Positions 17,926 to 41,900 are shown, counted from the first letter of the stretch. The stretch is DNA of 64,000 nt from Oopsacas minuta (GCA_024704765.1 JAKMXF010000144.1:620001-684000); one strand, 5' to 3'. Notes: generated by a model not told the origin, from the sequence alone. Numbers and translations: made by a program.

Positions 17926-20900
17926 ATGGCAAGATTATCCTTCATATCACTACTGGCTGTATTGATTCTATTCATTCAGATATTATGTATTGGTAAGCTG
18001 CCCCACATTTCCCATATTTCCTATGTTTTAATATTTCTTATTTTGTAGAGTCACAATGTTCGACATCTAACTACTGTTTTCCTGGTGAGTGTGGATCATC
18101 ATGTACTTGCTATGATGGGTATTCGAGCTCTGCATCTTGTACTGATTGTTGTGATCATGGTATGTGAATTCTAATACATTTATCAACTCAATACACATTT
18201 TCTTGTGCTCTTATCCTGAAATTTTATTTATTTTCATATAAACTTTTCATTTCAGAGCAATATTTGGCAGTTAATATAAGCAATGTTTTCTTTATTAGCG
18301 GATGGATCTCCTACATTTGTAGACGCTAGTTTAGACTTCGAAAATTTTGAGCTTACACAATCACTCTCTGCAATTAGCCAAAATGGGTATATCCATAATG
18401 ATAGATTCACTTTTTTCTACACTAAATACCCGTTGAATGTAATCTCACAACTATCTTACTTAACTTCTGTTGATTTGAATACGGGAATTCCTCAAGATAT
18501 TAAAGATAAGTTAAGCAATGGTGAAGATTTAAACTGTGCTCTTGGAGGGTGTAGTTTCATAATACAAGGCTTCAAATCTGGTCTTGTTGATGTTGGAATA
18601 CTTTACCAGTATATATATAAGAACCGTAAGTGTAAATTGATTTAAATACGGTACACCCTCACTAATAGGATAGGCTAGAATGGCTCTACATTTTCCTTCA
18701 ATAATCTGTATTGTTCTTCTGAATAGTGAAGATATACTGTATTCTTAATTAACCTGTCTATGCCCGTATAATTACCAGTATTTCCAACGTAAATTTCGAA
18801 AAACCCAAACTGAAGCACAAAATAATTCTAACTTGAGAATATAATCCTAAGTCTTGGGATTTTTTCCTACACTTGAAAGAAAATCCAAGAACTTGGGAAA
18901 AAACCAAAGCGTTGGAGACACTGATACTTTCTTACGTACTATAATTTCTAGAAACTACAGTTGAATTTACAGAATCAGCTCCACTTCCAACCTGTCTAGG
19001 AAAAGCTGACAACTTCACACTTTACTCTAGCATACCAACACCTACTGGTGACACATTTGAATGTAAATATACAGCAAACGTCTCTATTCCAGGTCCTCTG
19101 GAATACGAAGACAGGTAGTTTACGATAGACCCAAAAATTTCGCCCTCCTAAATATATTTTCCCACAATTCGTACCTCTAAATACATACCGCTAGGTAACA
19201 CCCTACTAATACTTGTTCCGATTATAGTGTGGCGATCACATATAGTGCTAGAGGTGGAACAGAAACATTGGTGTATGACCAGGTTGCAATGACGTCATCC
19301 AACAGAACTGGCGATTCAACGGAGGGATTTGCTGTTAGAGTATTGTATTACGACTATATTGAGCCGTATAATTGCTATTTAAATAATAGTTTACATTGCT
19401 CTGAGTTAGGTATCACTAGTGATGATATGTTCTACACCCTCAACCACTATTCTACCACAAATCAGACCATAACCATTACATCAGTACATGGTTTTGTTGA
19501 TGAGTTAGCTCCCTATGTAAACTACATGTATTCTGTTTATATGCTGGTAGAGGGAGCTGCTAATCACAGTCTGCATGAGGATTTTGGTTTGGGAAATGCC
19601 GTACCTTTCAATCTTACTGATCTTCCATTGACAATCACCCTACCAGATACAGCTGGTGCTTATTCTGTTGTACTTCGTGTGATTGATTTGGCTGATAATA
19701 TGCGTCTCTCCAGAAGATTTGTAGTATCAGATAATTCTTCTGTTCTAGAGAGGGTACCAGCTAACTTACCCACAAGTCCTAACTCAATATTACAGGATGT
19801 TTCTACTCATAATATATACTGGCAATCTGATACACAGGCACTATTATATTATCAATGGAAAGACTACTATAAAAACGAGCAAATTGTTACACACCCTTGG
19901 TTGAACCCTGTTCTATCTTATAATAACCAGGATGTTGAATACATATACTCTGGATATGATGATGATATACCTCCCATGGCTATACAAGGCACAGTCAATG
20001 CTCACGGTATTATAGAGTTCGCGTATAACCTTATTCGTTACACGGATGGAGCATTTGAATATAACGTAACAACGGCTCCTACACTCTGGACTGCTATACC
20101 AGACGTAATGCCAGAGTACAGTCAGCAGCAGGATGCATCTGTGTCTGGAGACGCTTGGGTACTGTGGATTAGAGCTATAGATATATTCAATCATGAGTTG
20201 ATTGATTATATAGTTATTTATACAGAATTCTCTTCTCCAATGATAACTGATCTAGGATTAAGTAAGTTTAGTTAATATTTAATACGTATTTTTATAGAAA
20301 ATGTATACTAATATGGGAATATTTGCGAATTTCTGAGAAATTCTTGTATTCAAATCAACAGTAGTTAAGTAAGTTAGTTCTATTTTGTCCAATAATAACC
20401 TGAATTGTTATTTATGGATATAAAACTGGAGATGATGGAATTTTTCGAAACCCACAGATTAGGCAAATATAATCTCAGGAATTGATTATAAGTGGTTTGT
20501 AAGTATGCTATATGAAACAAATTTCTTTTAGAGGTAGATGATCGAGTGACACAGTTTGTGCAGAAATCAAAAGATATTACAGATCTAATAATATCTTTTA
20601 AAGCAATAGATCTTGAGAGTGGTATAAAGTCTGTGTACTGGGATATTGAGTATGAGAATCAGACTATTATAGCTACTGATACAGTCACTGTTGATATGCT
20701 TTCTGTTGTAAGTTTTGAATTCATTGGTATAAATGCATAATCTACTTATAGTGATAGTTATATCTGATGATATATGGAAATTTCACGTAGTGGCGTCAGC
20801 GCTGGTTATGTGGCGAATTACTAATTATTGTAGCGCTATTTCTACATGTCTTCCTGCAACCTATTTGGTGATATGAATCATGTAGTTGTTGGGATATTTT

Positions 20901-23900
20901 GTATATAGCAATCTAGGTTGCTGGTTAGAATAATCTTATCTTTAATTCAGCCGACTATTCACTCTGAAAGAATTACTATTTTATTTCAAACATATTTCAT
21001 TTTTGCATGATATTCAGGGCAAAATATCCTGAACTTCATGCAGAAATGATCTGTAATAGCAATTCAATAACCTTCGCAGGGACACTGGCGTAGCAATATG
21101 CGGTCAGGTGGTTCATTGAACCAGAGCTCCCTCCCGTTGTCTAGGGCCCAAGAGTTCCACAATTCGGCATATACAGGATTGCTGATATATTTCTTTTTAG
21201 GAAGAATGCAGTCAACTAGAATCAACTATTTGCTACTGTACTACAGCACATCTCTGTTTCAGACGTCTCTACGACATTACGCCAAACCCTGTCAAGTTTA
21301 ATATTACAGAACTACCTCATTTGGATACATTTATACTTAAGGTTGTTGTCACTAACTATGCTAACCTTACAAATACTGACTCCAGGACTATCATAATAGA
21401 TGAATCTCCTCCAATAGCAGGTACTTATATGCATATATGTATATGCCATTATTTTCTAGAATCCTTAAAATTTGTTTAAATATCATATTTGTTTTTTAGC
21501 ACTCCTTTATTATTATAATATATACAAATACATAACACGATTACCGGACTCTAATGCTAACTGAGTCCTTCTAGGCCTAAGCTCAGTAACTACTACCTGA
21601 ACTAACATACTAGTAAACTAATCTATATAGCACTAAGATGAGTACATAATTACCTTATTGAGAATTCTAAGCAGATCCTCTCTAAAAAGGAGACATGATC
21701 TCTTACAATATCTTTGAGGGTGCTAACTCCATCATTGATTCCGATGTTAGACTCTCACTCTGCATCAGTATTTGCTCTTGCTTGGCAAGGTTTTCATACT
21801 GGATTGCTTTCTGTTGGTTCCCGCGTTTTGCTTCTGCCTTTGATTTGATCATGAAATACCTGTACATATCAAGGGAGTAGTTTTGTTTTGCTGTATCCTT
21901 GAGACTCTGTATTTGATCTTTAATTTTTCCAAGTAATTTGTTCATCTTTTCTTGAGTTTTAGCTTTCTCCCTCTCAAGTGACACTCTCTTTTGGTCATAG
22001 ATGGAAAGTCGTTTGTTCGCGTCATCTAACTGTTGTTTCACATCCTTCACAAATTCTTCACTTTCTACTATTTCGTCTTTGTAGATGTAACGCTCATTAC
22101 TGTGCCAATCCCATTTACATCTTTCTGGACAGATTCTACAATACCCATCTGTCATTGCCCAGCATCTTGCTTTATCACTATCGTTTTGAATGCTGCAATT
22201 ATCATGACACGTGTAGGTGCATTTTTTGCAGAATGTTGTTATGTTATTGGTAGCAACCGGTACCTTTTTATGTGCTGTAACTTTCTTTGTAAAGTGCCTC
22301 TTGCGTTCAACCTCACCTTTTCCAGCTTCCAGGTTCCTTAAGTTCTCTTCACCAATATTCTTGATTACAAGAGCTTTGTCTAACTCAGAAGTGATAGCAT
22401 TGATATTCATTTTTAGCTTTTCTCTATCTTCTATGACTGCTTTAGTTGTTGTTAAGCTAAAGGCATGTTGATGACCGACATCTCTGAAGAATTTTTCGAT
22501 GCTATCAATTGTATTATCCCAATACATTTTAGTGAATGGAGTCCTTTGTGAGGGATTTTTGAATAGATCTGCGTTATTAAAGGCGAACCAGCGTTTTTCA
22601 TCGAATGGAAAATTACTTTTTTCTAACGCACTTAGCATCTCAGGATGACTCCCATCCTCGAATGTAGCCAGTAAATATATATTTTCTTTCGCTTCTTTCC
22701 CAAAGAATAACAGTACTCTATCAATGATGTACCTTTGTATGTCTGTTAGTCTGTTCACGTTAGCCTTCACTACAAAACATACTGCATGACATTCATCTTC
22801 TATTTTGAGTAGTTCATTGATTTGTTCTTTTATCATTTCATCTCTTTCTATCCCTTGCGTATCCCCAAATCCTGGAATATCCCAAATTTGAATGTCATAT
22901 CCTAATAGAGTATCCTCTATTAGGTATCCAGAGATATCTGTTGTTTGACTGATACTCTGATCGCCTGCACTATCAACTTCATCAATGACTAGCTTGAATC
23001 TTAATGGATCTTCCATCTCTACCCCAGCTGCATAGTTAATGAATGCATTGATTAGTGTGCTTTTCCCACTTCCAGTTTCTCCCATCATGATTATATTTTT
23101 CGGGTTCTTCTTTGTTACCTTTTGATAGTCACTGACTGATATTTTCTCTGCTGGAAAGGTATACATGTCCAATTCATTGTCATATTGATTTGGAATTTTC
23201 GTACTTTTTCCTTTCCAAGTTTTCAATATTGATTTTTCCAGTGTTCTATCAGGTTTTGAATGTTCTACTTCAGTCATTACAGCTTATTGTTTGCAATCGC
23301 TAAGTTGTTATCTAGTAGATAATATGATATTGTTATCCTTTGAATTTATTATTTAAATATCTTCGAGTCAGTTACATCATACAATCTAATCGAATTTGGG
23401 ATTAATAGTATATGCCTTGTTGTTGGTAATGTGCATGTGTATTTGATGGAAATTTCCTGTGTACATTACAGAGTCAGTGACTGATAAACGAAATTCAAAA
23501 ATCCAATATAGTAATTTTTTTCTGAAGTTGAAATATAATTTGATTGAATTTTTTGTTTTTTTATGCAAAAGTTCATCTATAATTTTATTATGACATCATT
23601 GAGTAATTTGGTAATTCGTTATTCTATGAGTATAAGTTTTCTTATGAATTGTTTGTGAAAGGAATTTTTTGTCTTTTTATATTCAGATTACCTTTATGTA
23701 ATATTTTTGGGAATTCGAAGGAATATATAATTATCTATTGTCTCTCCTTTTATATTCGTACTTGTATCGCTATATTTTGCTTATTTTTTGCTTATTATTT
23801 GCTATATTTTCATTTTCGCGAATTATTCCTATTATTTTAAATAATTGTGAGGTTATTTGTGGTAACTTTTGCTAACGATAATTGAACATTTGAGAATACT

Positions 23901-26900
23901 CAGACATTCTGTATTATTAACTTATCTAAAATTCTTTTAATATTAATTATATTATAACAATTCATTAATCATTTGTAGATATTTCATATGATTCTCGTTA
24001 CGTAATACAATCAAGAATCTTTGTTTTTCTTAACGAATTTCGCATTAACCGAAATTATTTTAATATTTGCATTTAAGAGAACTTACTACTTCTATATCGT
24101 AAAGATTGTTTATACTTATCCAGAATTTGTAATAACGATATTCCTTCATAATTTGGAGTCTTTCAAAGGGTAATTACTAATGCAAATGAAGGATGGTGTT
24201 ATGTGTGTGTGAAGAGTGTAACAGGTCCATTTCTTCGTATTACAAATTTTCATATATCGTGACGCACAGAGGAAGGTAGTGTGTCAAAATTTTGGAAATT
24301 TAGAGTTACGTAACGTTTGAACGGCACCTTGATATCAATAAATATTCATTACTTAAGTTAGAAAGAGCTGATGATGTTTTCAAACATGCACACACATAAC
24401 TACAAATCTAAATATTCTATTCTAAACAAAACATACTAACCTATACAGAACTTAGCTAGTATAGCAGCTAATAACTAGTCAGTATAGCTACATTATACAT
24501 ACATTCTTCAGAGAAGAGGGCTTGTGAAAGACATTTCCTTTTCAAGCTCTATTATTTCTGATTTTATCTTTTCCAGTGCTTCCTCTGGATTGACTTTCTT
24601 GTGATTAACCGCTTCAGGTCGAGACATAGTCTGAGACATCCTCACTACAATATATTGTATTAGGAATGTTTCTATTTCGAATGGTGTACAATGTTCGTGT
24701 CTGGACTTCTTTTGCTGTTTTATGAGTTCTAAATAGTTGTATGTGCTATCAACATCAAAGTATGGTGCTATTCTCTTCAATTCTGTTAGATTTGATTGAA
24801 CTTTGATTTGCCACTCTAATGCTTCCTTCGTTAGCTTTGTATACTCATTGGTACAATTCTTTATGTCAGCTTCAATATGAGTCAATTGTGCCTTTGCTTG
24901 ATCGAATATTACTTTCTTGTTATAGTTCCTGTTTTGTTTGGTAGTTTGTTTCTCTTCAATAATGTAAGGATGATCCTCGTGATATTTGGCTGAACACTTG
25001 TGTGGACAATACTGGCAGTTTCCGTTTATGTCGAAAGCTTCACATTCCTTTTTATCTTTTTTGAGACAATCAGCATGACACGTGAATACGCACACAGTGC
25101 AGTACGTAGTATTTTTCTTAGTTGCTTCAGAATATTTGATTGTTGATGTCTCTTCCGTATAGTAATTCGTGTTATCTCGTATTATCCCTTGTTTTATGGA
25201 TTTCTCATCTTCAAGTTTCTGACACTTGATCGTATGTCCCTTCATTAGGTCTAGGCTCCCCAAGAACCCTTTACTGTTAACATTCAGTTGATGTTTTTGT
25301 TCCAGAATGTTATTATTAGAATATTCTAATTGTATTACCTTTCTAGCATGAAGCTTGTCAATGAAGTTATTAATTAACTTCATATTTCTATCCCAGAACA
25401 GTTTGCTTATTTGAGGCATGCTAGATTCTCTCTCAAACATTACTCCATTATTGATAGTGTATACCTGTTGAGGTAGGAAAGGAAATGTATACTCTGTTAA
25501 GTCAGGTAGTATTTCTTCATAATGAGATGGAAATGTGAGGAATAGGTAGACATATGGTATGATCTCTTTCCCGAAGTAGGACAACATTTGGTTGAAGAGA
25601 TACTTCTTCACTTGCTTTGTCTTCTCGCTACTTTTCTTACTTATCACATCATTATACTTCTCAACAACCACTACAGCATCTAGATGTTGTATTTTGTGTA
25701 GAAAGTCTGCTATGGATTTAGATATGTTCATGTCATGTTCAAATCCGTTAGTATTGGAAAACCCAGGTGTATCCCAGAACACGTAGCTGTTGGTAGAATG
25801 CTTCACCTCCAGTTTATAGCCTTGTATTGCATCAGTTAAACTGGTACCTGTTTGCTCTTCATTATCTATAGCTTTGAATCTGAATTGGGTGGATTGCTCC
25901 ATTTTGAGAAGAACGTTAGCAATAGAGTTAATAAGTGCACTCTTACCACATCCTGTCTCTCCTAGGATCAGTATCTGCTTGACTGTATCTTCTTGATTTG
26001 CAAAACCACTTTGAGTGATTTGGCATGACAGTAGTTTGGTATTCATTTTGTTTTGCTGCTTTTGTTTACCTTCTGCAAGTGCTAACTCTATTATGACCTG
26101 TTGGTTGTATGTTTTGATGCTAGACTGAGCTAGATCTTCATTATGTACTACTATACCTCCAATAATTGGTACACCATATCGCTTGTAATTCTCTAACAGC
26201 TGTAGGAAATCTGTTCTTGTATCTTGACATGTTATCTTCAAATCTTCTTTTAATTCTTTGTCTGTTAAGGAAAGAAGAATGTCTCCTTTAATGTCACCTA
26301 AATCTTCAAAGTTTATTTTCTTGAACTCGTTTGGAAATGTGAATTCAAGGATCGATTTCGTTTGAGTCTCAGTCAGATCTTCTACTTTCACAAATGTGCA
26401 TTGTTCTGTCATCTTCTAATGTCTCAGATAATTTGTGCTAGTTCATTTACCATAACAAGAATTAATATTTTGATATTTGATTGCACTTTTTTGGAATTAT
26501 TCGACATTACCGACGAATTCAAGCCACCTTCCTTTGTTTAATTAATACCGTATTATCCTGAATACGCGCCGAGGCGCCCGAGGCTTATTCAGGGAAATAC
26601 AGTATTGATATGTATATACGTACAGTTTGAATATATTTCTTACTGATTGAATATATAAGGGATGGACTCTACTAGTCCTTCTAAGCTCAGTGACTACTAC
26701 CTGAGCTAACATACTAGTAAACTAATCTATATAGCACTAAGATGAGTACATAATTACCTTATTGAGAATTCTAAGCAGATCCTCTCTAAAAAGGAGACAA
26801 GATCTCTTACAATATCTTTGAGGGTGCTAACTCCATCATTGATTCCGCTGTTAGACTCTCACTCTGCAATTGTATTTGCTCTTGCTTGGCAATTTTTTCA

Positions 26901-29900
26901 TACTGAATTGCCTTCTGTTGGTTCCCGCGTTTTGCTTCTGCCTCTGATATGGTCGTGAAATACTTGTACATATCTAGTGAGTAGTTTTGTATTGCTGTAT
27001 TCTTGAGACTCTGTATTTGATCTTTAATTTGTCTAAGTAATTTGTTAATATTTTCTTGAGCTTTAGCTGTCTCCCTCTCAAGTTCCACTCTCTCTTTGTC
27101 ACAGATGGAAAGTTCTTTGGTCGCATCATCAAAGAGTTGTTTGTCATCATCCTTGACAAATTCTTCACTTTCTACTATTTCGTCTTTGTAGATGATAGGC
27201 TCATTACTGTGCCAATCCCATTTACATCCTTTTGGACAGATTCTACAATACCCATCTGTCATTGCCCAGCATCCTGCTTTATCACTATTGTTTGGAATGC
27301 TGCAATTTTCATGACATGTGTGGGTGCATTTTCTGCAGAATGTTGTTATGTTCTTGGTAGGAACTGGTACCTTTGTATGTGCTGTAACTTTCTTTTTAAA
27401 CTGCTCCATGTTCTCAACCTTACTTTTTACAGCTTTCAGTTTCATTAAGTTCTCTTTACTATTTTTCTTAATTTCAAGAGCTTCGTCTAACTCAGAAGTG
27501 ATAGCATTGATATTCATTTTTAGCTTTTCTCTATCTCCTATGACTGCTTTAGTTGTTGTTAAGCTAAATGCATGTTGATGGTCGACATCTCTGAAGAATT
27601 TTCCAATGCTATCAATTGTATACTCCCAATACATTTTTGTACATTCAGTCCTTTGTGAGGGATTTTTGAATAGATCTTTGTTATTGAAGGCGAACCAGCG
27701 GTTTTCATCGAATGGAAAATTACTTTTTTCTAACGCACTTAGCATCTCAGGACGATTCCCATCCCCGAATGTAGCCAGTAAATATATATTTTCTTTCGCT
27801 TCTTTCCCGAAGAATAACAGTACTCTATCAATGATGTACTTTTGTATGTCTGTTAGTCTGTTCACGTTATCCTTTACTACAAAACATACTGCATGACATT
27901 CATCTTCTATTTTGAGTAGTTCATTGATTTGTTCTTTTATCATTTCATCTCTTTCTATCCCTTGCGTATTCCCAAATCCTGGAGTATCCCAAATTTGAAT
28001 GTCATATCCTAACAGAGTATCCTCTATTAGGTATCCAGAGATATCTGTTGTTTGACTGATACTCTGATCGCCTGCACTATCAACTTCATCAATGACTAGC
28101 TTGAATCTCAATGGATCATCCATCTCTACCCCAGCTGCATAGTTAACAAACGCATTCAGAAGTGTACTCTTCCCTGTTCCCGTTTCTCCCATAATGATTA
28201 TCTTCCTCAAGTTCTTGCTTGATGATTGCTTATATTCGCTTATTGATGTCTTCTTTGCTGGGAATGCATATATATCCAATCCTCGTATACATTCCTTTAC
28301 AATCTTTGTGCTCTTGTTTACAAATTCATCAAATATTGTTCTTTTTGGCTTTTCAATAATGTTTCTATCTGGTGTTATCCTGAATAATTTTACTATAGCT
28401 TTTCTAGTTTCCGTTGTTATCCTGAATGGTAGTTGATGGGCTAGTGTATTATGGAATCTGATGATGCTGTTAATGGTAATATCCCAATATTGTTTAGCTG
28501 CGCTGCTCCTTTCAGATTTAGATTTAAACAAATCTGCATTGTTGAATGCGAAAAAGCAGTTTTCATCGAATGGGAATTTGCTCTTCATTGACTGGCTTAT
28601 ATCCTTTGGACAATCTTCGTCACCGAATCTAGCGAGTACGTATGTGTTCATTTCTGCTTTTCTCTTGAATAATTGTTGTATACTATCAATGATGATCTTT
28701 TGTGTGTCTGTCAGTCTGTCTACGCTTGGATTGATCACAAAACAAATTGCATGAAATTCATCAATATTAAACAGGTCATCAATTTGTTGTTTTATCTTTT
28801 CATCTCCATCCCCAAACTCTGGAGTGTCCCATATCATGATAGGATATTCCAAAAAAGTATCTTCAATGAGATATCCAGATATCTCCCTTGTAAGAGATTC
28901 ATTTTCATGATTAACTAACTTGAATCTTAATGGATCCTCCATCTCTATTCCAGCTGCATAATTAATGAATGCATTAATTAGTGTGCTTTTCCCACTTCCA
29001 GTTTCTCCCATCATGATTATATTTTTCAGGTTCTCCTTTGTTACCTTTTGATAATGACTGACTGATATTTTCTCTGCTGGAAAGGTATACATGTCCAATT
29101 TATTGCTACATTGATTTAGAATTTTCGTACTTTTTCCTTTCCAAGTTTTCAATATTGATTTTTCCAGTGTTCTATCAGGTTTTGAATGTTCTACTTCAGC
29201 CATTACAGTTTATTGTTTGCAATCGCTAAGTTGTTATCTAGTAGATAATATGATATTGTTATCCTTTGAATTTATTATTTAAATATCTTCGAGTCAGTTA
29301 CATCATACAATCCAATCGAATTTGGGATTAATAGTATATGCCTTGTTGTTGGTAATGTGCATGTGTATTTGATAGAAATTTCCTGTGTACATTACAGAGA
29401 CAGTGACTGATAAACGAAACTCAAAAATCCAATGTAGCAATTTTTTTAAAGTTGAAATATAATTTGATTGAATTTTTTGTTTTTTGTGCAAAAGTTCATC
29501 TATAATTTTATTATGACATCATTGAGTAATTTGGTAATTCGTTATTCTATGAGTATAAGTTTTCTAATGAATTGTTTGTAAAGAATTTTTTGTCTTTATA
29601 TATTCAGATTACCTTTATGTAATATTTTTGGGAATTCGAAGGAATATATAATTATCTATTGTCTCTCCTTTTATATTCGTACTTGTGTCGCTATTTTTTG
29701 CTTATTTTTTGCTTATTATTTGCTATATTTTCATTTTTGCTAATTATTCCTATTATTTTAAATAATTGTGAGGTTATTTGTGGTAACTTTTGCTAACGAT
29801 AATTGAACATTTGAGAATACTCAGACATTCTGTATTATTAACTTATCTAAAATTCTTTTAATATTAACTATGTTATAACAATTCATTAATCATTTGTAGA

Positions 29901-32900
29901 TATTTCATATGATTCTCGTTACGTAATACAATCAAGAATCTTTGTTTTTCTTAACGAATTTCGCATTAACCGAAATTATTTTAATATTTGCATTTAAGAG
30001 AACTTACAACTTCTATATCGTAAAGATTGTGTATACTTATCCAGAATTTGTAATAATGATATCCCTTCATGATCCTGAGTCTTTCAAACGGTAATTACTA
30101 TTGCAGATGAAGGATGGTGTTGTGTGTGTGTGCATGATGTAACAGGTCCATTTCTTCGTATTACAAAGTTTCAAAAATCTTGACACACAGAAGAAGGTAG
30201 AGTGTCAAAATTTTGTAAATTTAGAGCTAGAGTTACGTAACGTTTGAACGGCACCTTATTATCAATAATTATTCATTACTTAAGTTAGAAAGAGCTGATA
30301 ATGTTGTCAAACACACACACATAACTACAAATCTAAATATTCTATTCTAAACATAACATACTAACCTATACAGAACTTAGCTAGTATAGCAGCTAATAAC
30401 TAGTCAGTATAGCTACATTATACATACATTCTTCAGAGAAGAGGACTTGTGAAAGACATTTCCTTTTCAAGCTCTATTATTTCTGATTTTATCTTTTCCA
30501 GTGCTTCCTCTGGATTGACTTTCTTGTGATTAACCGCTTCAGGTCGAGACATAGTCTGAGACATCCTCACTACAATATATTGTATTAGGAATGTTTCTAT
30601 TTCGAATGGTGTACAATGTTCGTGTCTGGACTTCTTTTGCTGTTTTATGAGTTCTAAATAGTTGTATGTGCTATCAACATCAAAGTATGGTGCTATTCTC
30701 TTCAATTCTGTTAGATTTGATTGAACTTTGATTTGCCACTCTAATGCTTCCTTCGTTAGCTTTGTATACTCATTGGTACAATTCTTTATGACAGCTTCAA
30801 TTTGAGTCAATTGTACCATTGCTTGATCGAATTTTATTTTCTTGTCGTTATTCACGTTTTGTTTGGTAGTTTGTTTCTCTTCAACAATGTAAGGAAAAGC
30901 CTCGTGATGTTTGGCTGGACACTTCTTTGGACAATACTGGCATTTTCCGTGTTTGTCGAAAGCTTCACATTCCTTTTTATCTTTTTTGAGGCAATCAGCA
31001 TGACACGTGAATATACACACAGTGCAGTACGTAGTATTTTTCTTAGTAGGTACTGAATATTTGATTGTTGATGTCTCTTCTGTATAGTAATTCGTGTTAT
31101 CCCGTATTATCCCTTCTTTTATGGATTTCTCATCTTCAAGTTTCTGACACTTGATCGTATGTCCCTTCATTTTGTCTAAGCTTCCGAAGAACCATTTGCT
31201 GTTAACATTCAGTTGATGTTTTTGTTCTAGAATGTTATTATTAGAATATTCTAATTGTATTCCCTTTCTAGCATGAAGCTTGTCAATGAAGTTACTGATT
31301 AACTTCATATTTCTATCCCAGAACAGTTTGCTTATTTGAGGCATGCTAGATTCTCTCTCAAACATTACTCCATTATTGATAGTGTATACCTGTTGAGGTA
31401 GGAAAGGAAATGTATACTCTGTTAAGTCAGGTAGTATTTCTTCATAATGAGATGGAAATGTGAGGAATAGGTAGACATATGGTATGATCTCTTTCCCGAA
31501 GTAGGACAACATTTGATTGAAGAGATAGTTCTTCACTTGCTTTGTCTTCTCGCTACTTTTCTTGCTTAACAGATCATTGTACTTCTCAACAACCACTACA
31601 GCATCTAGATGTTGTATTTTGTGAAGAAAGTCTGCTATGGATTTGGATATGTTCATGTCGTGTTCAAATCCGTTAGTATTGGAAAACCCAGGTGTATCCC
31701 AGAACATGTAGCTGTAGGTAGAATGCTTTACCTCCAGTTTATAGCCTTGTATTGCATCAGTTGAACTGGTACCTGTTTGCTCTTCATTATCTATTACTTT
31801 GAATCTGAATTGGGTGGATTGCTCCATTTTGAGAAGAACGTTAGCAATAGAGTTAATAAGTGCACTCTTACCACATCCTGTCTCTCCTAGGATCAGTATC
31901 TGCTTGACTGTATCTTCTTGATTTGCAAAACCACTTTGAGTGATTTGGCATGACAGTAGTTTGGTATTCATTTTGTTTTGCTGCTTTTGTTTACCTTCTG
32001 TAAGTGCTAACTCTATTATGACCTGTTGGTTGTATGTTTTGATGCTAGACTGAGCTAGATCTTCATTATGTACTACTATACCTCCAATAATTGGTACACC
32101 ATATCGCTTGTGCTTCTCTACCAGCTGTAGGAAATCTGTTCTTGTATCTTGACATGTTATTTTCAAATCTTCTTTTAATTCTTTGTCTGTTAAGGAAAGA
32201 AGAATGTCTCCGTTAATATCACCTAAATCTTCAAAGTTTATTTTCTTGAACTCGTTTGGAAATGTGAATTCAAGGATCGATTTCGTTTGAGTCTCAGTCA
32301 GATCTTTTACTTTCACAAATGTGCATTGTTCTGTCATCTTCTAATGTCTCAGATAATTTGTGCTAGTTCATTTACCATAACAAGAATTAATATTTTGATA
32401 TTTGATTGCACTTTTTTGGAATTATTCGACATTATCGATGAATTCAAGCCACCTTCCTTTGTTTAGTTAATACCATTTTGTCCTGAATACGCGCCGAGGC
32501 GCCCGAGGCTTATTCAGGGAAATACAGTATTGATATGTATATACGTACAGTTTGAATATATTTCTTACTGATTGAATATATAAGGGATGGACTCTACTAG
32601 TCCTTCTAAGCTCAGTGACTACTACCTGAGCTAACATACTAGTAAACTAATCTATATAGCACTAAGATGAGTACATAATTACCTTATTGAGAATTCTAAG
32701 CAGATCCTCTCTAAAAAGGAGACAAGATCTCTTATAATATCTTTGAGTGTGATAACTCCATCATTGATTCCGCTGTTAGACTCTCATTCTGCATCTGTAT
32801 TTGCTCTTGCTTGGCAAGGTTTTCATACTGGATTGCCTTCTGTTGGTTTCCGCGATTTGCTTCTGCCTCTGATAAGGTCATGATATAACTGTACACATCT

Positions 32901-35900
32901 TTTGAGTAGTTAAGTATTGCTGTATTCTTGAGACTCTGTATTTGATGTTTAATTTGTCCAAGTAATTTGTTCATATTTTCTTGAGCTTTAGCTTTCTCCC
33001 TCTCAAGTGACCGTTTCATTTCTTCATAGATGGAAAGTTGTTTGGTCGCATCATCAAACTTTTGTTTCACATCCTTGACAATTTCTTCTTTTTCTACTAT
33101 TTCCTCTTTGTAGATGTAAGGCTCATTCTGGTGCCAATTCCATTTACATCTACCTGGACAGATTCTACAATACCCATCTGTCATTGCCCAGCATCTTGCT
33201 TTATCACTCTTGTTTGGAATGCCGCAAGTTTCATGACAAGTGTGGGTGCATTGTATGCAGAATGTTGTTATGTTCATGGTAGGAACACTTACTTTTTTGT
33301 GTGCTGTGACTTTCTTTTTAAACTGCTTCGTGCGTTCAATCTGACCTTTTTCAGCTTCTAGTTTCCTTAAGTTCTCTTCGCAAGTATTCTCGATTACAAG
33401 AGCTTTGTCTAACTCAGTTTTGATAGCATTGATATTCATTTTTAGCTTTTCTCTATCTTCTATGACTGCTTTAGTTGTTGTTAAGCTAAAGGCATGTTGA
33501 TGACCGACATCTCTGAAGAATTTTCCAATGCTATCAATTGTATTATCCCAATACATTTTAGTGAATCCAGTCCTTTGTGAGGGATTTTTGAATAGATCTG
33601 CGTTATTAAAGGCGAACCAGCGTTTTTCATCGAATGGAAAATTACTTTTTTCTAACGCACTTAGCATCTCAGGACGATTCCCATCCCCGAATGTAGCCAG
33701 TAAATATATATTTTCTTTCGCTTCTTTCCCGAAGAATAACAGTACTCTATCAATGATGTACTTTTGTATGTCTGTCAGTCTGTTCACGTTAGCCTTCACT
33801 ACAAAACATACTGCATGACATTCATCTTCTATTTTGAGTAGTTCATTGATTTGTTCTTTTATCATTTCATCTCTTTCTATCCCTTGCGTATCCCCAAATC
33901 CTGGAGTATCCCAAATTTGAATGTCATATCCTAACAGAGTATCCTCTATTAGATATCCAGAGATATCTGTTGTTTGACTGATACTCTGATCGCCTGCTCT
34001 ATCAACTTCATCAATGACTAGCTTGAATCTCAATGGATCATCCATCTCTACCCCAGCTGCATAGTTAACAAACGCATTCAGAAGTGTACTCTTCCCTGTT
34101 CCTGTTTCTCCCATAATGATTATCTTCTTCAAGTTCTTGCTTGATGATTGCTTATATTCGCTTATTGATGTCTTCTTTGCTGGGAATGCATATATATCCA
34201 ATCCTGGCATACATTCCTTTTCAATCTTTGTGCTCTTTCTCTTGAATTCGTTCAAGACTGTTTTATTTTGTTTTTGTGTTATATCGCCTTCATATTGTAT
34301 GAGGTCCAGAGGTACTCCCTTTTTCCTATATTCAGCTATTTTCTTTAAAAAGAGTTTTCTTTTAATGCTACTTTTAACTTTTAACTCATTTTTGAGAGTT
34401 TTATCATCTATGACATTGAATATTTCCCCTGTTACTTCTCCATAATTCCCTGATAACAATAGTTGTGTGATACTTTGGAATTTCATTTGCCCCAGCAAAT
34501 GTTGTGTTTCTTTTTCAGTTAGTTTGTTCAATTCTTTAGTTTTCGTACAGGAAGCCATCTATGTTGTATCTAAAATTTGTTTTAATTCATTCATAATTAT
34601 ATGACTTAAAGTGCACATCTAGACCCCAAATCTTTCTATAATGAGATACCATTTATGACCGCACAGATCACTCGCATACTACGTATTCAGGTATAGTGCA
34701 ATGATAATTCACACCTGCCAACCGTACAGGGATTTTAGTTGATACAATTAGTGAGTCTAATAATACATAACACGTGTACATTTGTGTGTGTAAATTAACA
34801 ATTCTTATTCAAGAGTACAAAGATCCTCTGTACAATCTGTGTTTCACAACTCAGTTGCTTCTGGTTAAAACTAGATTTCATAAACTCAAGCCTTCTTATA
34901 CCGGGCTCTTACTCTACGCATTTTAACCAACTAATATTTGACCATTTCAGAGGTTAAGAGTTATATGTATTATCTGAGGTATGCACTCTAATCGAATTTG
35001 GCTAAATCCATTGTATATTGAACATGGATTTTGCTAACCTCAGCAACCTGGATTGCTATATACAAAATCCTAGCAAACTCATGATCCTCGTCACCAAAAA
35101 GGTTGCTGGAAATTTCTATGTAACAACCTAGGTTGCTGGGAAGTTTGTATATAGCAATATTGGTTAGGTAGACCTATTAGATATTTGTATTCTCTAAATG
35201 TAAAACTTAAGAAAAGAATTTATTACTTACTTAGACTTGTCTTTGGAATCTTTATTGGGAAAATATGTTTTCAGCGTTGAGTTTTATAATTTGTTAATAT
35301 TCCCAATTTCAAACTGGTATATATAGCAGTGTACTATAAATTTGTTTTGTGAATGACTCATTCGATATCTCTTTAGTATTATAGTAAAGTTTATTTTGTA
35401 GATAAACTATTAGAATGACTCATTCTAATAATAGCATAATTTCTTGAAACTTTTAGAATGACTCATTCTAATAGCTTATTTTGTTGGATCAAATTCAAAT
35501 TCATACACAGATAATATATTAGTTAATGTAACTCATTTTGAAAGCCACAAATACACTCACATACGTATATATACTGTATTTAGGTTTCGTATCTGATAGT
35601 GAGGTGGGTCAAGACGACATAGACTATCAATCTGATTCTCTGCTTCATGTCTCTTGGACTGGATTCTTTGACAGAGAATCTGGTGTATATTTCTACTTGT
35701 ATGGTTATTCAGACAGCTGTTTGACTACAGATGTGTTTGTATTGTTTGATAATTCAACGGTAAATAATCTTTATCCACATAATCTGTTTATTGTTTTGAT
35801 ATATTTTATTACAATATATTCTCTATTATAGCTGAACTTAACTTATTCAACTTTCGCATCATACGATGCTCCAACTCCAGGTCTCTATTACGTTACAGTA

Positions 35901-38900
35901 GTTGCGTATAATCTAGCACTAGCTAAATCAACTCCTGTATGCTCTAATGGTATAACATATGATATAACACCGCCTATAATACGGAGCATCAATGTTGTAC
36001 ATGCAAAGATTATCCCAGGCTTGGCTAAAATACAAGTAAACAGCTCTTTATATGAAGTTTGGCTCTTAGACGAGAATAGAGAGAGAAGAATGTTACGACA
36101 GAGCAATGTGTCACAAGAATGTATTGACAAAGCAACTCTAATAAATGACGTCATGATATTTCCTCCTTATACTATTAAGCTACGGAATAATACTGTAGTA
36201 GATGATATTGAACTGAGCGAAGAGGAAAGCTATTTCATTTGTCAATCAGTCAATGCTTATTCTAGTTTAAGTTATATGTATACTGTTCATGAGTTGGATG
36301 TAAGATGGGAAGGAGAAGATGCTGAGAGTCCAATTCACAACTACGAAGTTGGAGTTGCGGAAACTTCCTCGCAAGAAGCCGCGCCCGATTTGTTATCGTA
36401 TCATTCTACAGGGACAATAGAACAGTTTATATCTCACCATGTCAATACCATGAAGATGTTTTATATCTTTGTTAGAGCTATTAATAGAGCAATGCTTGAA
36501 ACTACTATTACGTTAGGTCCATTTATCGTCGACACTACAGCACCAGTGTATGACAATAGTGTTATAAGTGTTACTCTACAGGAAGTATTTATACTAGGGA
36601 ATTGGAGTAGTACTGCTTTTCAGGATTCTGATGAACCTCAACTATTAGCTTATGAAGTTGCACTTGGTAAGGATAAATACAAACTAAATATTAACTTTAT
36701 TCAATACGTATACATTTTTCGTCCAAGTACCCATTATCAATTTTCCTGAGCACCCCTCATAGATAACACCGCCTATCCGTCGACACCCAATTACGAGCCG
36801 TGAACGTCTTAATAATCCATATACACTCGCTCGGAGACATATAACTAGATATCTGATTTATAACAGAATTTACAGTTAACTAGCTCCCGTTATATCGAAG
36901 ACTGAAATTGTACAAATCTGGACCCTAACCTTCAAAGTAACATAATTTCATTGATTATATCAAAGTAATTAACGCTTTCGATATAACAGAGTTGACTGTA
37001 TTTGAATATTCAATCGTAAATATTTTAAATCAATTGAGTATGTTTGACGTTTATATTTTATGCTATACTTTTAGGTACTGAGAAAGGTCTAGAAGATGTA
37101 ATAGCATTCCAATACATAACAGTAGTAGCAGCATGTACAGGGTTCTGTACTGATTGTGTGTGTGCTGGGTTAGACACGAGACAGCTAGGAGATTTCCTAC
37201 ACAGTGATCACACATACTATCTCACGGTACGAGCTAGTAATGGTGCTGGGCTATTCGCAACAGGAAGTTCAGATGACTATACTCACGTAGCAGAGTTCCC
37301 AGACATTGGAGTTGTAATTGAAATAAATCCTGAATCAACCCATATTGATACTGCTGATTTTAAACAGATAGACGATGTTGATTTTCAGATCGGGACAACT
37401 GATATAGCTTGTAGATGGGATGGCTTTGAACATCCACACGTTGAAGTCACATATATGGTTGCCTTAGGAACTGCACCTGGCACAATTAACAATATAACCG
37501 CGTTTATATCAACAGGACAACACACTTCATACAAATTCATCAATCTATCACTAACAGAATATACGAAATACTACATCACTGTAATAGCTACGAATGTAAT
37601 AGGATCTGTGACTGCGTATTCAAATGGTGTAACTGTTGTGCCTCAAAACGCACCAATAATGAATACTGTGAACGTCTCTATTGGCCTTGGATGTGGTGTA
37701 GAGAACACTAATTATGTTCAGGATTCAGATTTCAGCCAATTGTACATGAATACAAGTTCTAGCCCTTGGAATATTACATCTGGTCAGGTTTTGAAGAACA
37801 CAAATTTTACATACGTCTACCTAGCTAACAATACAATGATAATGCAATCATTGACTTTATTGCAAGGGAATTTCTATACACTGGTAGTTAGTGTATCTCA
37901 GCTGGCGAATACTTCTGATAATGAGGTGACAATAACAGCTGATCCTATGACGACTCGTCAATTCACTCTCACACAAAACATGTCAATATCTTATTCCTGT
38001 GAATTCTTAGCAGATCTCAATACGGTAGAACTGACGATATTTTCACTCAATTCCGGTCTGCGTTTATCTAGCATATCAGTGAAGCAGTGTGTTGACAATA
38101 TAGAGTATCAGGTGTCTACGTCACAGGTAGCAGCTAGATGGCTCTTCCCTTCTTCCCTAGAGCCATTCATTACGTATTATGAATGGGCTGTCTTACATTC
38201 TAACGGAGACTACGTACAGCCTTATATTAACGTTGGTAAAGTGTATTCTGCTCAAAATCCTAAACTTGAACTAAGCAATGCTAATTCATATTACGTATCA
38301 GTACGCGCGTGTAGTCTCCAGATCAGCTGTTTCCAAGCTGTCAACTCTAATCTATTTAAAGTTATTTCCTACCCTCCTGTAACCGGCGATATAGACGCAA
38401 CATATGTAGCTGCTGAGTATGGAGGAATCCTGAATATTACTTGGGAGAGGTTTGAGAATCAAAACTCTACAGTTGATCTATACGAGTGGATCTATGGATT
38501 TGGGACTGATACTATCGAGTTTGCTCTTTCACCATGGACGCTAATAACTCAAAATGAGCTTCAGGATCTAACAATCATACGAAACCTCACTCTAGACCCG
38601 ACACAGTATTATTACGTATCAATTAAAGGCTACAATCTCGCTGGGCTTTCCACCATGGTAACAGAATTAGTACTGTTTAATAGTACAAAAGATGAAGGTG
38701 ATGTATACGTCATTGACATATTTCCTGAGAATTTCAGAGTGTTAGGCGTGGAAGATAGTTGGACTGATCCTAACAGGGCTTATACTAAGAATCAGACTGC
38801 ATTAGCAGCTGTTTGGCCCAAATTGATGAATACAAACTTTGATTACTGTTTTACAACAAAACCAACTGTACCTCCGTATAGTGAATGTATGGAGAAACCG

Positions 38901-41900
38901 GAGCTAAAGACGCCACATAATTCCGCTATTATTACAAATCTAATGCTAGATGAAGGAGTGAAATATTATTTCTGTATTTATACACAGAATGAGACTATTC
39001 CTTTTGGAGGAGGGGAACCGGTAGTCATTCCTGCTAGGAGTATCTGTAGTAATGGAATTGTATTTGATAACTCTGCTCCAGAACCAGGTATAGTACAGTG
39101 CTTATATTCATAGAATAAAGGAACTAAAATACTTGGACAATAGTGTATTTCTAATACAAATTTTTATACCAAAATTTCTTGTTTCTTTTTGATTTTTGCT
39201 ATAAAGCAAACATTTTATAGCCTAGTTAATATTAGTATATTTCTCCAGGTAAGGTATACATTGGCTTTGACTATGGTATGTCCTCTACACAATACCAAGT
39301 ATCCACAACAGATCTCCCAGTACGTTGGAATGGCTTCATGGATGAAGAAGAGACACGAGGAGATCATCACCATGGTATCGCCTATTACGAATATGCTATT
39401 GGTTCTACACCAAACGGAACAGATGTTGTTTCATTTCTAAACGTAGGATTCAATACTCATATCATCGCTACCAACTTAACACTAGTTAGCGGATTCACTT
39501 ATTATGCTACTGTATTCGCCTATGATTATGTGGGTCTCTCAATGTCTGCTATATCAGATGGAGTTACTATTGATAACACTCCACCCGTGGCCGGAATAGT
39601 AACAATTGGATATACTGACTTAGGACATTCTGACTATCTGTCTGAGATAAATGTACAGGCTCATTTCAAAGGATTTACGGATACAGAGAGTGGTGTTAAG
39701 GATGTTTATTGGGCTATTGGAACGGCCAAGGGACTGGCTGACATTAAAGGATTCGAAGAAGCTCAGGAATTGGATTTGGCCTACACTGAAGAGGCATTAA
39801 CTGATATTAAAGATGGCCAAACTATTTACGTTACAGCTAGGGTAATTGATACTTTCTTATTATTAGATTGGATACATTTTAAACGATTACGCCTTCTCCG
39901 TTACGAGCGTAATGAATCAGAACACTGAATTTTAGCACTGCGTTTTTCCCAATTCCTCAAAAATTCGATATTTTTACACTTTTTGATATTCAAAATTTCA
40001 AATTTTGCCGCTCGTAAGAAGTTAAGCGATAGACTTTGAACGCTAAAAATGGTTGTTTACAGAAAATTAATCATCGAAGTACTGCCAAATTATTTTATTT
40101 GTTATTGTTAATTCACCTAAAACTGCGCTATTGATTACTCTATATTAGGTCTTTAACGATGCTGGTCTGTACACACAAGCCTACTCTAATGGAACGATTA
40201 TAGACTCCAGCCCTCCTACCAGAGGCTTTGTGATAGACGGACTCGGTGAGGATATAGATTTCACAAAAGATTTACACACATTCTCTTCTCACTGGGATGG
40301 ATTCTTGGATCCACATTCTGACATTGTTGAGTATGAGTGGGCTATCGGAACTTGTGAAACCTGTTCAGATGTCAGAGCTTTCATTTCTACTGCACTTGTA
40401 CAGAGTGAGTTATTCATGATATATTTAATTGTGATAACTAGTACACATATATTAATAGAAGGATATACTGGTAGCTGTATATATCTCTAATAGAGGACAG
40501 TATATGATTCTACGTAGATAATAGTTGTTCAATCATTTTTACCAACTATTGCCTTCCCTACATACTCATCAAGCTCTCCAAACAGATCAATGTTCTGTCC
40601 TTGTAACACCTTAGCTATCTCTTTCTCTAAACACTCATTGCTACCGAGCATCCCCTTGATAACGTGAGCTGACCAGAGGAAGTACTCTTTCACTCTATCC
40701 TCCTCCCATCCTTCTGGTACCTGCTCCGCCAAGTCTCTCAGATTGTACAGTTTGTCTGCTAGCTTCACCAGTTTAGCTTTAGAACTCTTCTTAGGACTTT
40801 TTTTAATCTGATTCATCTTCCTCTCTAGCTTAGGTAGTGACTTATCATCAGAAACTTCATCCACCAGACATCTCACTTCTGCTCCGAATATTAACTCTAT
40901 CTCTTCTAATGTTGTGTCTGTGTCCTCAACAGTATCATGGAGTATAGCTGCCTACAAATTTATATAGCATTATCTTCAACAATATACATATTATTTATTA
41001 CAGCGAACTCTCGTTATAACAGAGTGCTCCCCCGGTTTCATTCTTTATAAGCGGTATTTCTTTGAAAACGGCAATTACTTTAAAGTTATAGAGGGCAGAG
41101 AACCACTTCGTTATATCCTACTTGGTTATAACAGGAGCTTAATGTAATTAATTACTTACATTTACAACATACTAATATACTAACATATCCATGGTCCTAT
41201 ATTCTATTACAAATTTACACTTTAAGAGTGCATCGAATTAATAAACGTAATTTTCCATAAAATATTATTTGTTGCTTTGATAGAATTAATCAAAGGCTGT
41301 AGAGTATTACTACATCTTCTGTATGTATCAACTAGCTTGATTGTCTACGATTTGCATACACATCTACAAGTTGAAACATATGCGTATTGACTATTTCAAT
41401 GGGAATATCTCTGACTTTAGGAAGTTCTTCTTTACTAGAATCTTGCTCCATATCTTCCTCACCAGCCGGATACGAATACGGATCATACCCGAGGGTCCTA
41501 GGGTCGTTTAACTCTGGTACATAAGTGAAATTAAGTCCTATATAGAATACAATTCCACAAATTATGAAGAATGGTATATAGGTTGGCACAGCGATTGCCC
41601 AGTATTTCTTTGGTATATATGTTATCCCGAGATCGTGTAGACTCTCATCTGGTACGTATGCCCATACAAGGTATGCTATCATTAATATGAAGGATGCTTG
41701 ATAAGCTACGAAGCCGTAAATAGCACGTGATGGTTTTGGAAATGGATTGCTCTCTGGTTCGATTCGAGGCATAGCGTGAACTTAATTAAATAAAGCTATA
41801 GTAGTGATTCTTATTATTAAGCCATAAAGCCAGTCTTAAAGAGTGGTTCAATATAAAGAATTATTCATGGATGTCTAGCTATTTGTAATTTACTTAGTTA

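Follow-up and report, generated by a model that had tools for sequence, protein, structure and literature searches.

Paired SAM-GTPase genes with a Cys/His-tipped hairpin in Oopsacas minuta: a candidate two-gene immune-type cassette

The five-gene array

The subject of this analysis is a tandem array of five genes, here called A1, B1, A2, B2 and C, which occupies positions 21703-34558 of a 64,000-nucleotide (nt) window of Oopsacas minuta DNA (GCA_024704765.1, JAKMXF010000144.1:620001-684000); "the window" is this whole stretch, and positions are counted from its first letter. As a first-pass annotation had described, the five open reading frames (ORFs) are intact and co-oriented, lie on the minus strand, and follow one another in the transcription order C, B2, A2, B1, A1. 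The annotation's description of the genes as intronless holds for the coding ORFs only, the untranslated regions (UTRs) being outside that statement. Its division of the genes into two diverged types, A/C and B, is confirmed, as identity between the types is about 27% and B1 and B2 are 94% identical. Each protein joins a GTPase (G) domain to a module of eight cysteines and two histidines and to long helices, with a SAM domain at the N-terminus of three of them. The genes and the spacers between them are as follows.

21703-23277, minus strand: gene A1, intact ORF of 524 amino acids (aa); SAM-less A-type with a single G domain (WDIPGF), mosaic
24508-26412, minus strand: gene B1, intact ORF of 634 aa; B-type, 94% identical to B2
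26807-29203, minus strand: gene A2, intact ORF of 798 aa; chimera with two G domains, P-loops at aa 66 and 339
30433-32337, minus strand: gene B2, intact ORF of 634 aa; SAM, divergent G domain, putative zinc hairpin and helices
32732-34558, minus strand: gene C, intact ORF of 608 aa; SAM, G domain, putatively zinc-tipped beta-hairpin and helices
32338-32731, minus strand: A/C-to-B spacer from C to B2, 394 bp; no AATAAA
26413-26806, minus strand: A/C-to-B spacer from A2 to B1, 394 bp; one ATTAAA
29204-30432, minus strand: B-to-A spacer from B2 to A2, 1,229 bp; several AATAAA/ATTAAA and TATA-like motifs
23278-24507, minus strand: B-to-A spacer from B1 to A1, 1,230 bp; twin of the B2-to-A2 copy, to which it is 95% identical

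The array contains two copies of a 5,925-bp unit, C with B2 and the C-like part of A2 with B1, and the earlier proposal that the B-containing unit was duplicated as a block is thereby upheld. The 394-bp spacers of the two copies are nearly identical, and a good splice-donor-like AAG|GTAATT is seen at the start of this spacer, about 47 nt past the stop codon; the two genes may be co-transcribed, or B may have a 5' UTR intron. The longer B-to-A spacer probably holds the promoter of the A gene together with the 3' end of the B gene. An assembly artefact was considered as the source of the repeats and rejected, as the copies differ by 3-20% and distinct chimeras are present.

Domain architecture and local rapid evolution

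The AlphaFold2 (AF2) model of C was built with 42 homologues and has a mean pLDDT (predicted local distance difference test) of 81.5. From the N- to the C-terminus it places a five-helix domain (15-80), the G domain (about 120-355), a helix at 331-353 followed by the long stalk helix of 43 residues (360-402), the two strands of a hairpin (413-434 and 476-494), a returning long helix (507-546) and a small C-terminal helical bundle. Orthologues of C are 607-614 aa long and share this layout. The coiled coil that had been proposed for these proteins takes the form, in the model of C, of the predicted long helices at 360-402 and 507-546. The parts of the proteins that matter for the argument are listed below.

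34304-34537, minus strand: SAM domain of C (aa 8-85); SARM1 profile match, Pfam SAM_1/SAM_2, five modelled helices
33485-34153, minus strand: G domain of C (aa 136-358); GETGTGKS, switch-I Thr196, WDTPGF, NRLT Arg, TFGD
33077-33322, minus strand: long beta-hairpin (C aa 413-494) whose tip carries the 8-Cys/2-His knot; present in both AF2 models, ligands invariant
32870-33229, minus strand: fast-evolving stretch of the A/C proteins (C aa 444-563); second half of the zinc knot, returning strand and first long helix
24838-25062, minus strand: patch (aa 451-525) that varies between the B paralogues; latter half of the zinc knot plus the residues after it

A search of the PDB sequences with C as a single sequence returned weak matches only (E>0.01), and family profiles were therefore needed. 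With a profile of 14 SAM sequences, the best PDB match, at E=2.8e-12, is SARM1's first SAM, and the next PDB SAM reaches only 4e-3; 11 of the 14 profile members match Pfam SAM_1 and 10 match SAM_2. By these profile and Pfam matches the N-terminal domain is a true SAM, present in C, B1 and B2, the three genes to which the first-pass annotation had assigned it, and absent from A1 and A2, the latter keeping a degenerate remnant. The likeness to SARM1 lies in this first SAM, which is matched far better than any other SAM in the PDB; the window proteins differ in having one SAM rather than a tandem pair, and neither ARM nor TIR. SARM1 itself executes cell death by consuming NAD and forms an octamer through its SAM domains.

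When the window proteins were scanned against Pfam, the G domain alone was recognized and the C-terminal half matched nothing. Scores for AIG1 (PF04548; threshold 27 bits) were 34.1 for C, 33.9 for A1, 56.6 for A2 (over two domains), 28.3 for B1 and 25.1 for B2, and C reached 33.8 bits for MMR_HSR1, about equal to its AIG1 score. Septin (PF00735) stayed below its threshold of 26.2 bits in A1 (20.9) and C (23.1), gave no match in B1 or B2, and reached 39.8 bits in A2 only by the summing of two domains. No NACHT or NB-ARC domain was found above threshold in the window proteins, the NACHT and nSTAND3 hits (13-24 bits each) covering the P-loop only, and an NCBIfam scan of the same proteins gave generic sub-threshold P-loop hits only. 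The P-loop claimed earlier, GETGxGKS, is present in every G domain. WDTPGF stands in B1, B2, C and A2's second G domain; the exceptions are A1, where it reads WDIPGF, and the first G domain of A2, where it reads WDTPEF. The A/C type carries GETGxGKS, DTPGF, NRLT, FGK and TFGD, and the B type is without the Arg and the Asp.

Searching by structure with Foldseek, the top matches to the G domain of C are GIMAP7 (E=2.6e-7), GIMAP2 and Toc34, and a representative-wide VIA search with C gave EngB (Z 14.8), Toc33 (14.3) and GIMAP7 (13.7). The G-domain family profile, searched against PDB sequences, finds Toc34/33 at 2e-10 to 9e-9, GIMAP4/7 at 1e-7 to 5e-7 and septins from about 5e-7. As Toc34, the GIMAPs and the septins are about equally distant by profile, the G domain is best placed as a separate branch of the AIG1/Toc/septin-like group and not as a GIMAP in the narrow sense.

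The GIMAP/AIG1 proteins, and GIMAP2-GIMAP7 especially, resemble the window proteins in the fold of the G domain (the best structural match), in helical extensions, in tandem expansion and in having members with two G domains, and one paralogue of the GIMAP7/GIMAP2 pair reportedly stimulates a catalytically weak partner; they differ in lacking the Cys/His hairpin and the SAM, their profile is no nearer than those of Toc34 and the septins, and B2 falls under the AIG1 threshold. Toc34/Toc33 with Toc159 form a heterotypic pair and give the best profile-to-sequence match, which extends over G3, an arginine aligned with R133, FGK and a T-x-x-(D/Q) G4 motif; the Toc proteins are, however, plant-specific, membrane-anchored parts of a translocon and have no SAM, zinc module or long stalk.

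The Cys/His module, reported earlier for these genes and found in all five proteins, has the pattern C-x2-C-x3-C-H-x2-C...C...C-x2-C-x3-C-x4-H; in fish, Daphnia, starfish and mussel homologues the ligands change little or not at all. In the AF2 models it sits at the tip of a two-stranded hairpin whose strands are about 20 residues each, and the hairpin and module modelled alone reach a pLDDT of 78.7; the knot would bind two zinc ions. A fold search with the isolated module gave no Foldseek match below E=1 and only Z<=2.3 with VIA, to rubredoxin-like zinc knuckles, and its sequence profile found nothing in the PDB beyond non-significant matches to C1- and PHD-type zinc fingers (E>=0.12). Assignment as a RING, PHD, C1, B-box or NFX1-type finger was tried and is not supported by these fold and profile searches. 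A transmembrane beta-hairpin of the pore-forming kind was likewise considered and rejected, both strands being rich in Lys and Glu. The hairpin, with no solved structural relative, is a structural target in itself.

Amino-acid differences between the paralogues are in excess around the tip of this hairpin. Over aa 444-563, C and the C-part of A2 are separated by 2 synonymous and 46 non-synonymous differences, a ratio of non-synonymous to synonymous differences per site (pN/pS) of 5.0 (binomial P=0.005); A1 and C by 4.8 and 41.2 (pN/pS 1.8, P=0.17); and A1 and the C-part of A2 by 6.5 and 33.5 (pN/pS 1.1, P=0.45). B1 and B2 differ over aa 451-525 by 2 synonymous and 21 non-synonymous changes (pN/pS 2.1), against 22 and 23 in the rest of the gene (pN/pS 0.26; Fisher P=0.001). 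The G domains have a pN/pS of 0.25-0.38, synonymous divergence is not raised in the fast stretches, and the fast stretch falls at the same structural place in A/C- and B-type proteins. Such a pattern is suggestive of diversifying selection at the zinc tip.

A-to-B pairing, gene fusion and the wider family

The array was compared with seven loci from six other assemblies, probably of glass sponges (L001-L005, L007 and L008, with L003 and L005 on one contig); B-type proteins were matched by protein search only in ENA assemblies. At all seven loci an A/C-type gene is followed directly by a B-type gene on the same strand, across a gap of 355-1,029 bp. The flanks of the window array (PI3K, PDZ, RING and an ORF of about 349 aa on one side, ORFs of 216 and 690 aa on the other) are kept in L001, L002 and L007 around a single pair, and from this it follows that the array of the window is a lineage-specific expansion. 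L008 has the order A-B-A-B, and the L003/L005 contig, at a different genomic site, reads A-B, a 920-aa gene, A-B. Decayed copies are also seen: L004 has one pair and a decayed second pair, L007 has frameshifted copies, and the frameshifted or fragmentary A and B copies at L004:12585-15152 and L007:4405-9521 still stand in A-to-B order. These remains suggest birth-and-death turnover, or else assembly errors.

The maximum-likelihood tree places A and B in two deep clades with 100% support and broadly similar internal branching, and paralogues within each cluster by assembly; the split between A and B thus predates the species, whereas the expansions, or else their homogenisation, took place within single lineages. 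Ancestrally, a SAM-bearing A stood next to a SAM-bearing B, with C the window copy of that A form and of the window genes the closest to it. The other A-type genes are derived, and the segments that record their history are these.

28388-29203, minus strand: older degenerate G domain of A2 (aa 1-272, G3 = WDTPEF); synonymous divergence (dS) 0.70 against A1 and 1.28 against C
28232-28483, minus strand: remnant of the second half of the SAM, with linker, in A2; matches C aa 52-135 at 46% identity, E=1e-18 (tblastn)
23008-23028, minus strand: approximate crossover in A1 (codons ~84-90, after the P-loop), placed by sliding identity

By tblastn, aa 1-272 of A2 align with C aa 99-366 at 54% and the remainder aligns with C aa 52-608 at 78%; A2 is an older G domain joined in frame to a C-like gene at a point inside the SAM, the remnant of which marks the junction. 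A1 is a mosaic, 91-98% identical to the N-part of A2 over nt 1-250, while from about nt 270 it agrees at 96-100% with both C and the C-part of A2. It appears to have come from unequal crossing-over between the two G domains carried by a gene resembling A2. No SAM-coding remnant was found upstream of A1 or A2.

The 920-aa gene between two intact A-to-B pairs of the L003/L005 contig (protein P0015, L005:1515-4277; ENA ERZ20067936, contig ptg000095l) encodes, in one frame, a SAM and an A-type G domain, continued by a G domain of B type, the zinc module and helices. It parallels the double-G A2 of the window and arose independently of it, and as a natural A-B fusion it gives a "Rosetta-stone" hint that the two G domains may work jointly.

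The B-type G domain has itself changed in a consistent manner. In four species the P-loop and DTPGF are kept, Lys takes the place of the NRLT Arg and is directly preceded by an insert of 7 residues, TFP(S/T)H stands where A has the G4-like TF(G/A)D, and switch I is altered. In the HMMER alignment, with the residue counted from the alignment as printed, the NRLT Arg of the family aligns with R133 of pea Toc34. R133 lies at the dimer interface of Toc34, and it and the arginine of GIMAP7 reportedly act across a G-domain dimer. As B lacks the arginine aligned with R133, we infer an asymmetric A-B heterodimer in which A would be able to give the arginine and B would not.

A full-length search found homologues with the G domain, Cys/His module and helices in Dreissena, Daphnia, Acanthaster, several teleosts and protist-like sequences. 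With a 98-residue profile of the module, searched against 1.84 billion cluster representatives, 1,541 clusters were matched at E<=1e-3 and 653 at E<=1e-10. The named members are from fish, Daphnia, starfish, mussel, rotifer, ostracod and the ciliate Stentor. None of them bears the name of a characterised protein, the source names including "uncharacterized", "hypothetical", "septin-1-like", "golgin ... like" and "DUF8206 domain-containing protein". Re-searching a set of 5.8 billion proteins with the profile gave essentially the same 57 proteins plus an Oopsacas minuta homologue, which at 58% identity is the closest named homologue. In most of 47 long members a septin-like G domain precedes the module, 34 of the 47 matching Septin and 23 AIG1. 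N-termini of the relatives carry FN3, stonustoxin-type MACPF/helical/thioredoxin, B-box, ankyrin or kinase domains, and that of a tuna member carries a PYRIN domain. The Stentor coeruleus protein P0081 (1,513 aa), named DUF8206 in UniRef, matches the module in seven tandem stretches and has no G domain or other Pfam match; DUF8206 is therefore probably the Cys/His module, which can exist as a repeat by itself.

Judged by these profile matches, the core is a very large uncharacterised animal and protist family whose members differ mainly at the N-terminus. Distribution is patchy, with no mammalian member in the searches run. No paper on the family with G domain, Cys/His module and helices was found among open-access papers and preprints, and the module is not among the partners listed in surveys of AIG1/GIMAP architectures, which name death-fold, CARD, Hint, kinase and ARM domains (PMC7053062, PMC12373286). 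The statement in the first-pass annotation that the domain combination belongs to no named family therefore stands insofar as no characterised family has it, but the combination is not rare; the distinguishing points in the present case are the SAM head and the pairing of the genes.

Two further genes were observed at another locus, L006. A third sponge subtype, represented by L006:8001-9881 and by proteins P0018-P0035, has a SAM and a shortened module, C-x2-C-x3-CH-x2-C...C...C-x2-C-x-C-x5-H; no B-type gene lies next to it at the one locus examined. At L006:228-2720 (ENA ERZ25072730) an 830-aa protein combines a typical AIG1/GIMAP-type G domain, with GITGAGKS and DCPGF, with a coiled coil and a large uncharacterised C-terminal domain, and has no Cys/His module. 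According to earlier papers, sponges are without GIMAP-type genes (PMC8857920, PMC7053062); if the L006 assembly is from a glass sponge, sponges would have GIMAP-like genes proper.

Interpretation and rival explanations

Taken together, the gene order kept in six other assemblies, the deep and roughly co-diverging A and B clades, the A-B fusion and the altered G domain of B speak for the two-component (A/C plus B) idea of the first-pass annotation. The interpretation we favour, with somewhat more confidence than doubt, is that of a two-gene immune-type cassette: a GTP-gated A-B hetero-oligomer with a stalk for variable ligands and assembly through the SAM. A and B would form a GTP-regulated hetero-oligomer via their G domains, A giving an arginine that matches the dimer-interface arginine finger of Toc34 and B, without it, being either a regulatory partner or a substrate. 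The stalk, with its fast-evolving and putatively zinc-binding tip, would be the surface that meets a variable ligand, whether a pathogen product or a guarded host target, and the SAM domains would turn the GTP-bound state into a higher-order signalling or killing assembly, in the way of the SAM, PYRIN and death-fold heads of other innate sensors. Binding of A to B, polymerisation, zinc binding and a role in immunity or cell death are inferred from sequence and models. The putative immune-like character is well motivated, fitting the changes in copy number with decayed copies, the local pN/pS above 1, the SARM1-like SAM and the relatives with PYRIN and stonustoxin-type MACPF domains.

Comparable logic is known from other conflict systems. 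Septin/GIMAP-like GTPase switches have been proposed in bacterial conflict systems (PMC8195603), to which this family offers a parallel. Eleos LeoA/LeoBC, a dynamin-like anti-phage defence of bacteria, consists of two cooperating large GTPases, and the G domain of C weakly matches PADLOC LeoBC at E=1.1e-9; however, the match covers only profile positions 42-163 of 601 (about 120), the rest is unrelated and C is not a member, so that the likeness should be taken as functional analogy only. The wider family also resembles the NLR/STAND proteins in its swappable N-terminal head, nucleotide switch and fast-evolving C-terminal part; it differs in using a TRAFAC GTPase rather than a STAND ATPase, in having no LRR, WD or TPR, and in Pfam hits to the P-loop only. 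The new elements are a version headed by a SAM, a conserved heterotypic gene pair in which one partner lacks the arginine, the A-B fusion found in nature and the localised rapid evolution.

A broader and distinctly more tentative proposal, which we think rather less probable, is that the family as a whole is a class of intracellular innate sensor, a GTPase counterpart of the NLRs with swappable heads. In glass sponges it would take the form of an obligate A-B pair in which the arginine of A activates B, the zinc tips read pathogen ligands and rings of the SARM1-like SAM execute the response.

Several points weigh against the favoured interpretation of an immune-type cassette. The stretches used for pN/pS were chosen after inspection and the counts are pairwise, among two to three paralogues with gene conversion, making the P-values optimistic; only one of the three A-type comparisons lies significantly above neutral. 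The 20-residue, two-stranded hairpin may partly be a modelling artefact of monomer prediction, and the arginine-finger role of Toc34 R133 is debated. Lastly, a single conserved pair at a fixed syntenic site, as in L001, L002 and L007, is also to be expected of a housekeeping pair.

This last point belongs to the strongest of the alternatives, in which A and B are a housekeeping pair of membrane- or cytoskeleton-remodelling GTPases forming a heteromeric scaffold in the manner of septins, Toc33/Toc159 or dynamin-like proteins, the extra copies being neutral. It is compatible with purifying selection on the G domains, with a G domain as near to Toc34 and the septins as it is to GIMAP, and with a stalk layout that aligns loosely, at high root-mean-square deviation, to SynDLP, mitofusin and BDLP. 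It sits poorly, however, with copies that differ in number and decay between close relatives, with an amino-acid excess at the stalk tip in both gene types, and with a patchy family that has no mammalian member in the searches run, whose relatives carry PYRIN and pore-forming stonustoxin-type domains and whose SAM here is nearest that of SARM1; we regard it as unlikely, though worth keeping in view.

Allorecognition, or self-nonself control of fusion, would have the variable stalk tips mark individuals and the SAM and GTPase trigger rejection. It draws on the same diversifying stalk tip, change in copy number and presumed oligomerising SAM head as the immune-type cassette, and sponges are known to reject allografts (mentioned in PMC8195603). 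The model contains no signal peptide or transmembrane segment, however, so that the proteins cannot meet neighbouring cells directly, and the family also occurs in solitary animals and ciliates; this explanation is improbable.

Similarly doubtful is the possibility that A and B are transcribed as a single unit, whether as a bicistronic message or spliced to give one protein with two G domains like GIMAP8. The short (394 bp), highly conserved spacer, free of AATAAA between C and B2, would suit it, as would the existence elsewhere of a real in-frame A-B fusion in P0015; yet the stop codon of A/C and the start ATG and full SAM of B are kept in every species examined, and the length of the spacer varies between species over the range given above. 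Finally, that the genes are mobile-element or viral cargo, inserted without introns into a host intron and amplified by the element, is very improbable. In its favour, each coding region is a single ORF, the ORFs on either side of the array are on the opposite strand and are perhaps exons of one host gene, and transposase genes flank the pair in L003. Against it, the same insertion site and flanks recur in at least four assemblies, A and B co-diverge, the window shows no transposase, integrase or terminal repeats inside the array or next to it, and the family is wide across animals and protists.

If the immune-type cassette is correct, it would be a compact two-gene innate-immune system in a very early-branching animal lineage and would provide the first functional hypothesis for more than 1,500 clusters, including the fish PYRIN and stonustoxin-type fusions. 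The A-to-B pairing, the A-B fusion and the missing arginine of B make the heterodimer idea testable in vitro. If it is wrong, the array still illustrates cleanly how a sponge gene family evolves by birth and death, by gene conversion and by unequal crossing-over at the level of domains.

Two observations concern the surroundings and composition of the array. Long plus-strand ORFs without an ATG of their own flank it at 19229-20275 and 36021-39113, with counterparts beside L001, L002, L007 and L008; the two ORFs showed no similarity on sequence comparison with each other, and they may be exons of one large glycosylation-site-rich gene, within an intron of which the array would be nested antisense. 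Over 22000-36000 the AT skew is strongly negative (-0.14 to -0.24), being near zero elsewhere in the window, in keeping with closely packed minus-strand coding sequence in which Lys and Glu codons abound.

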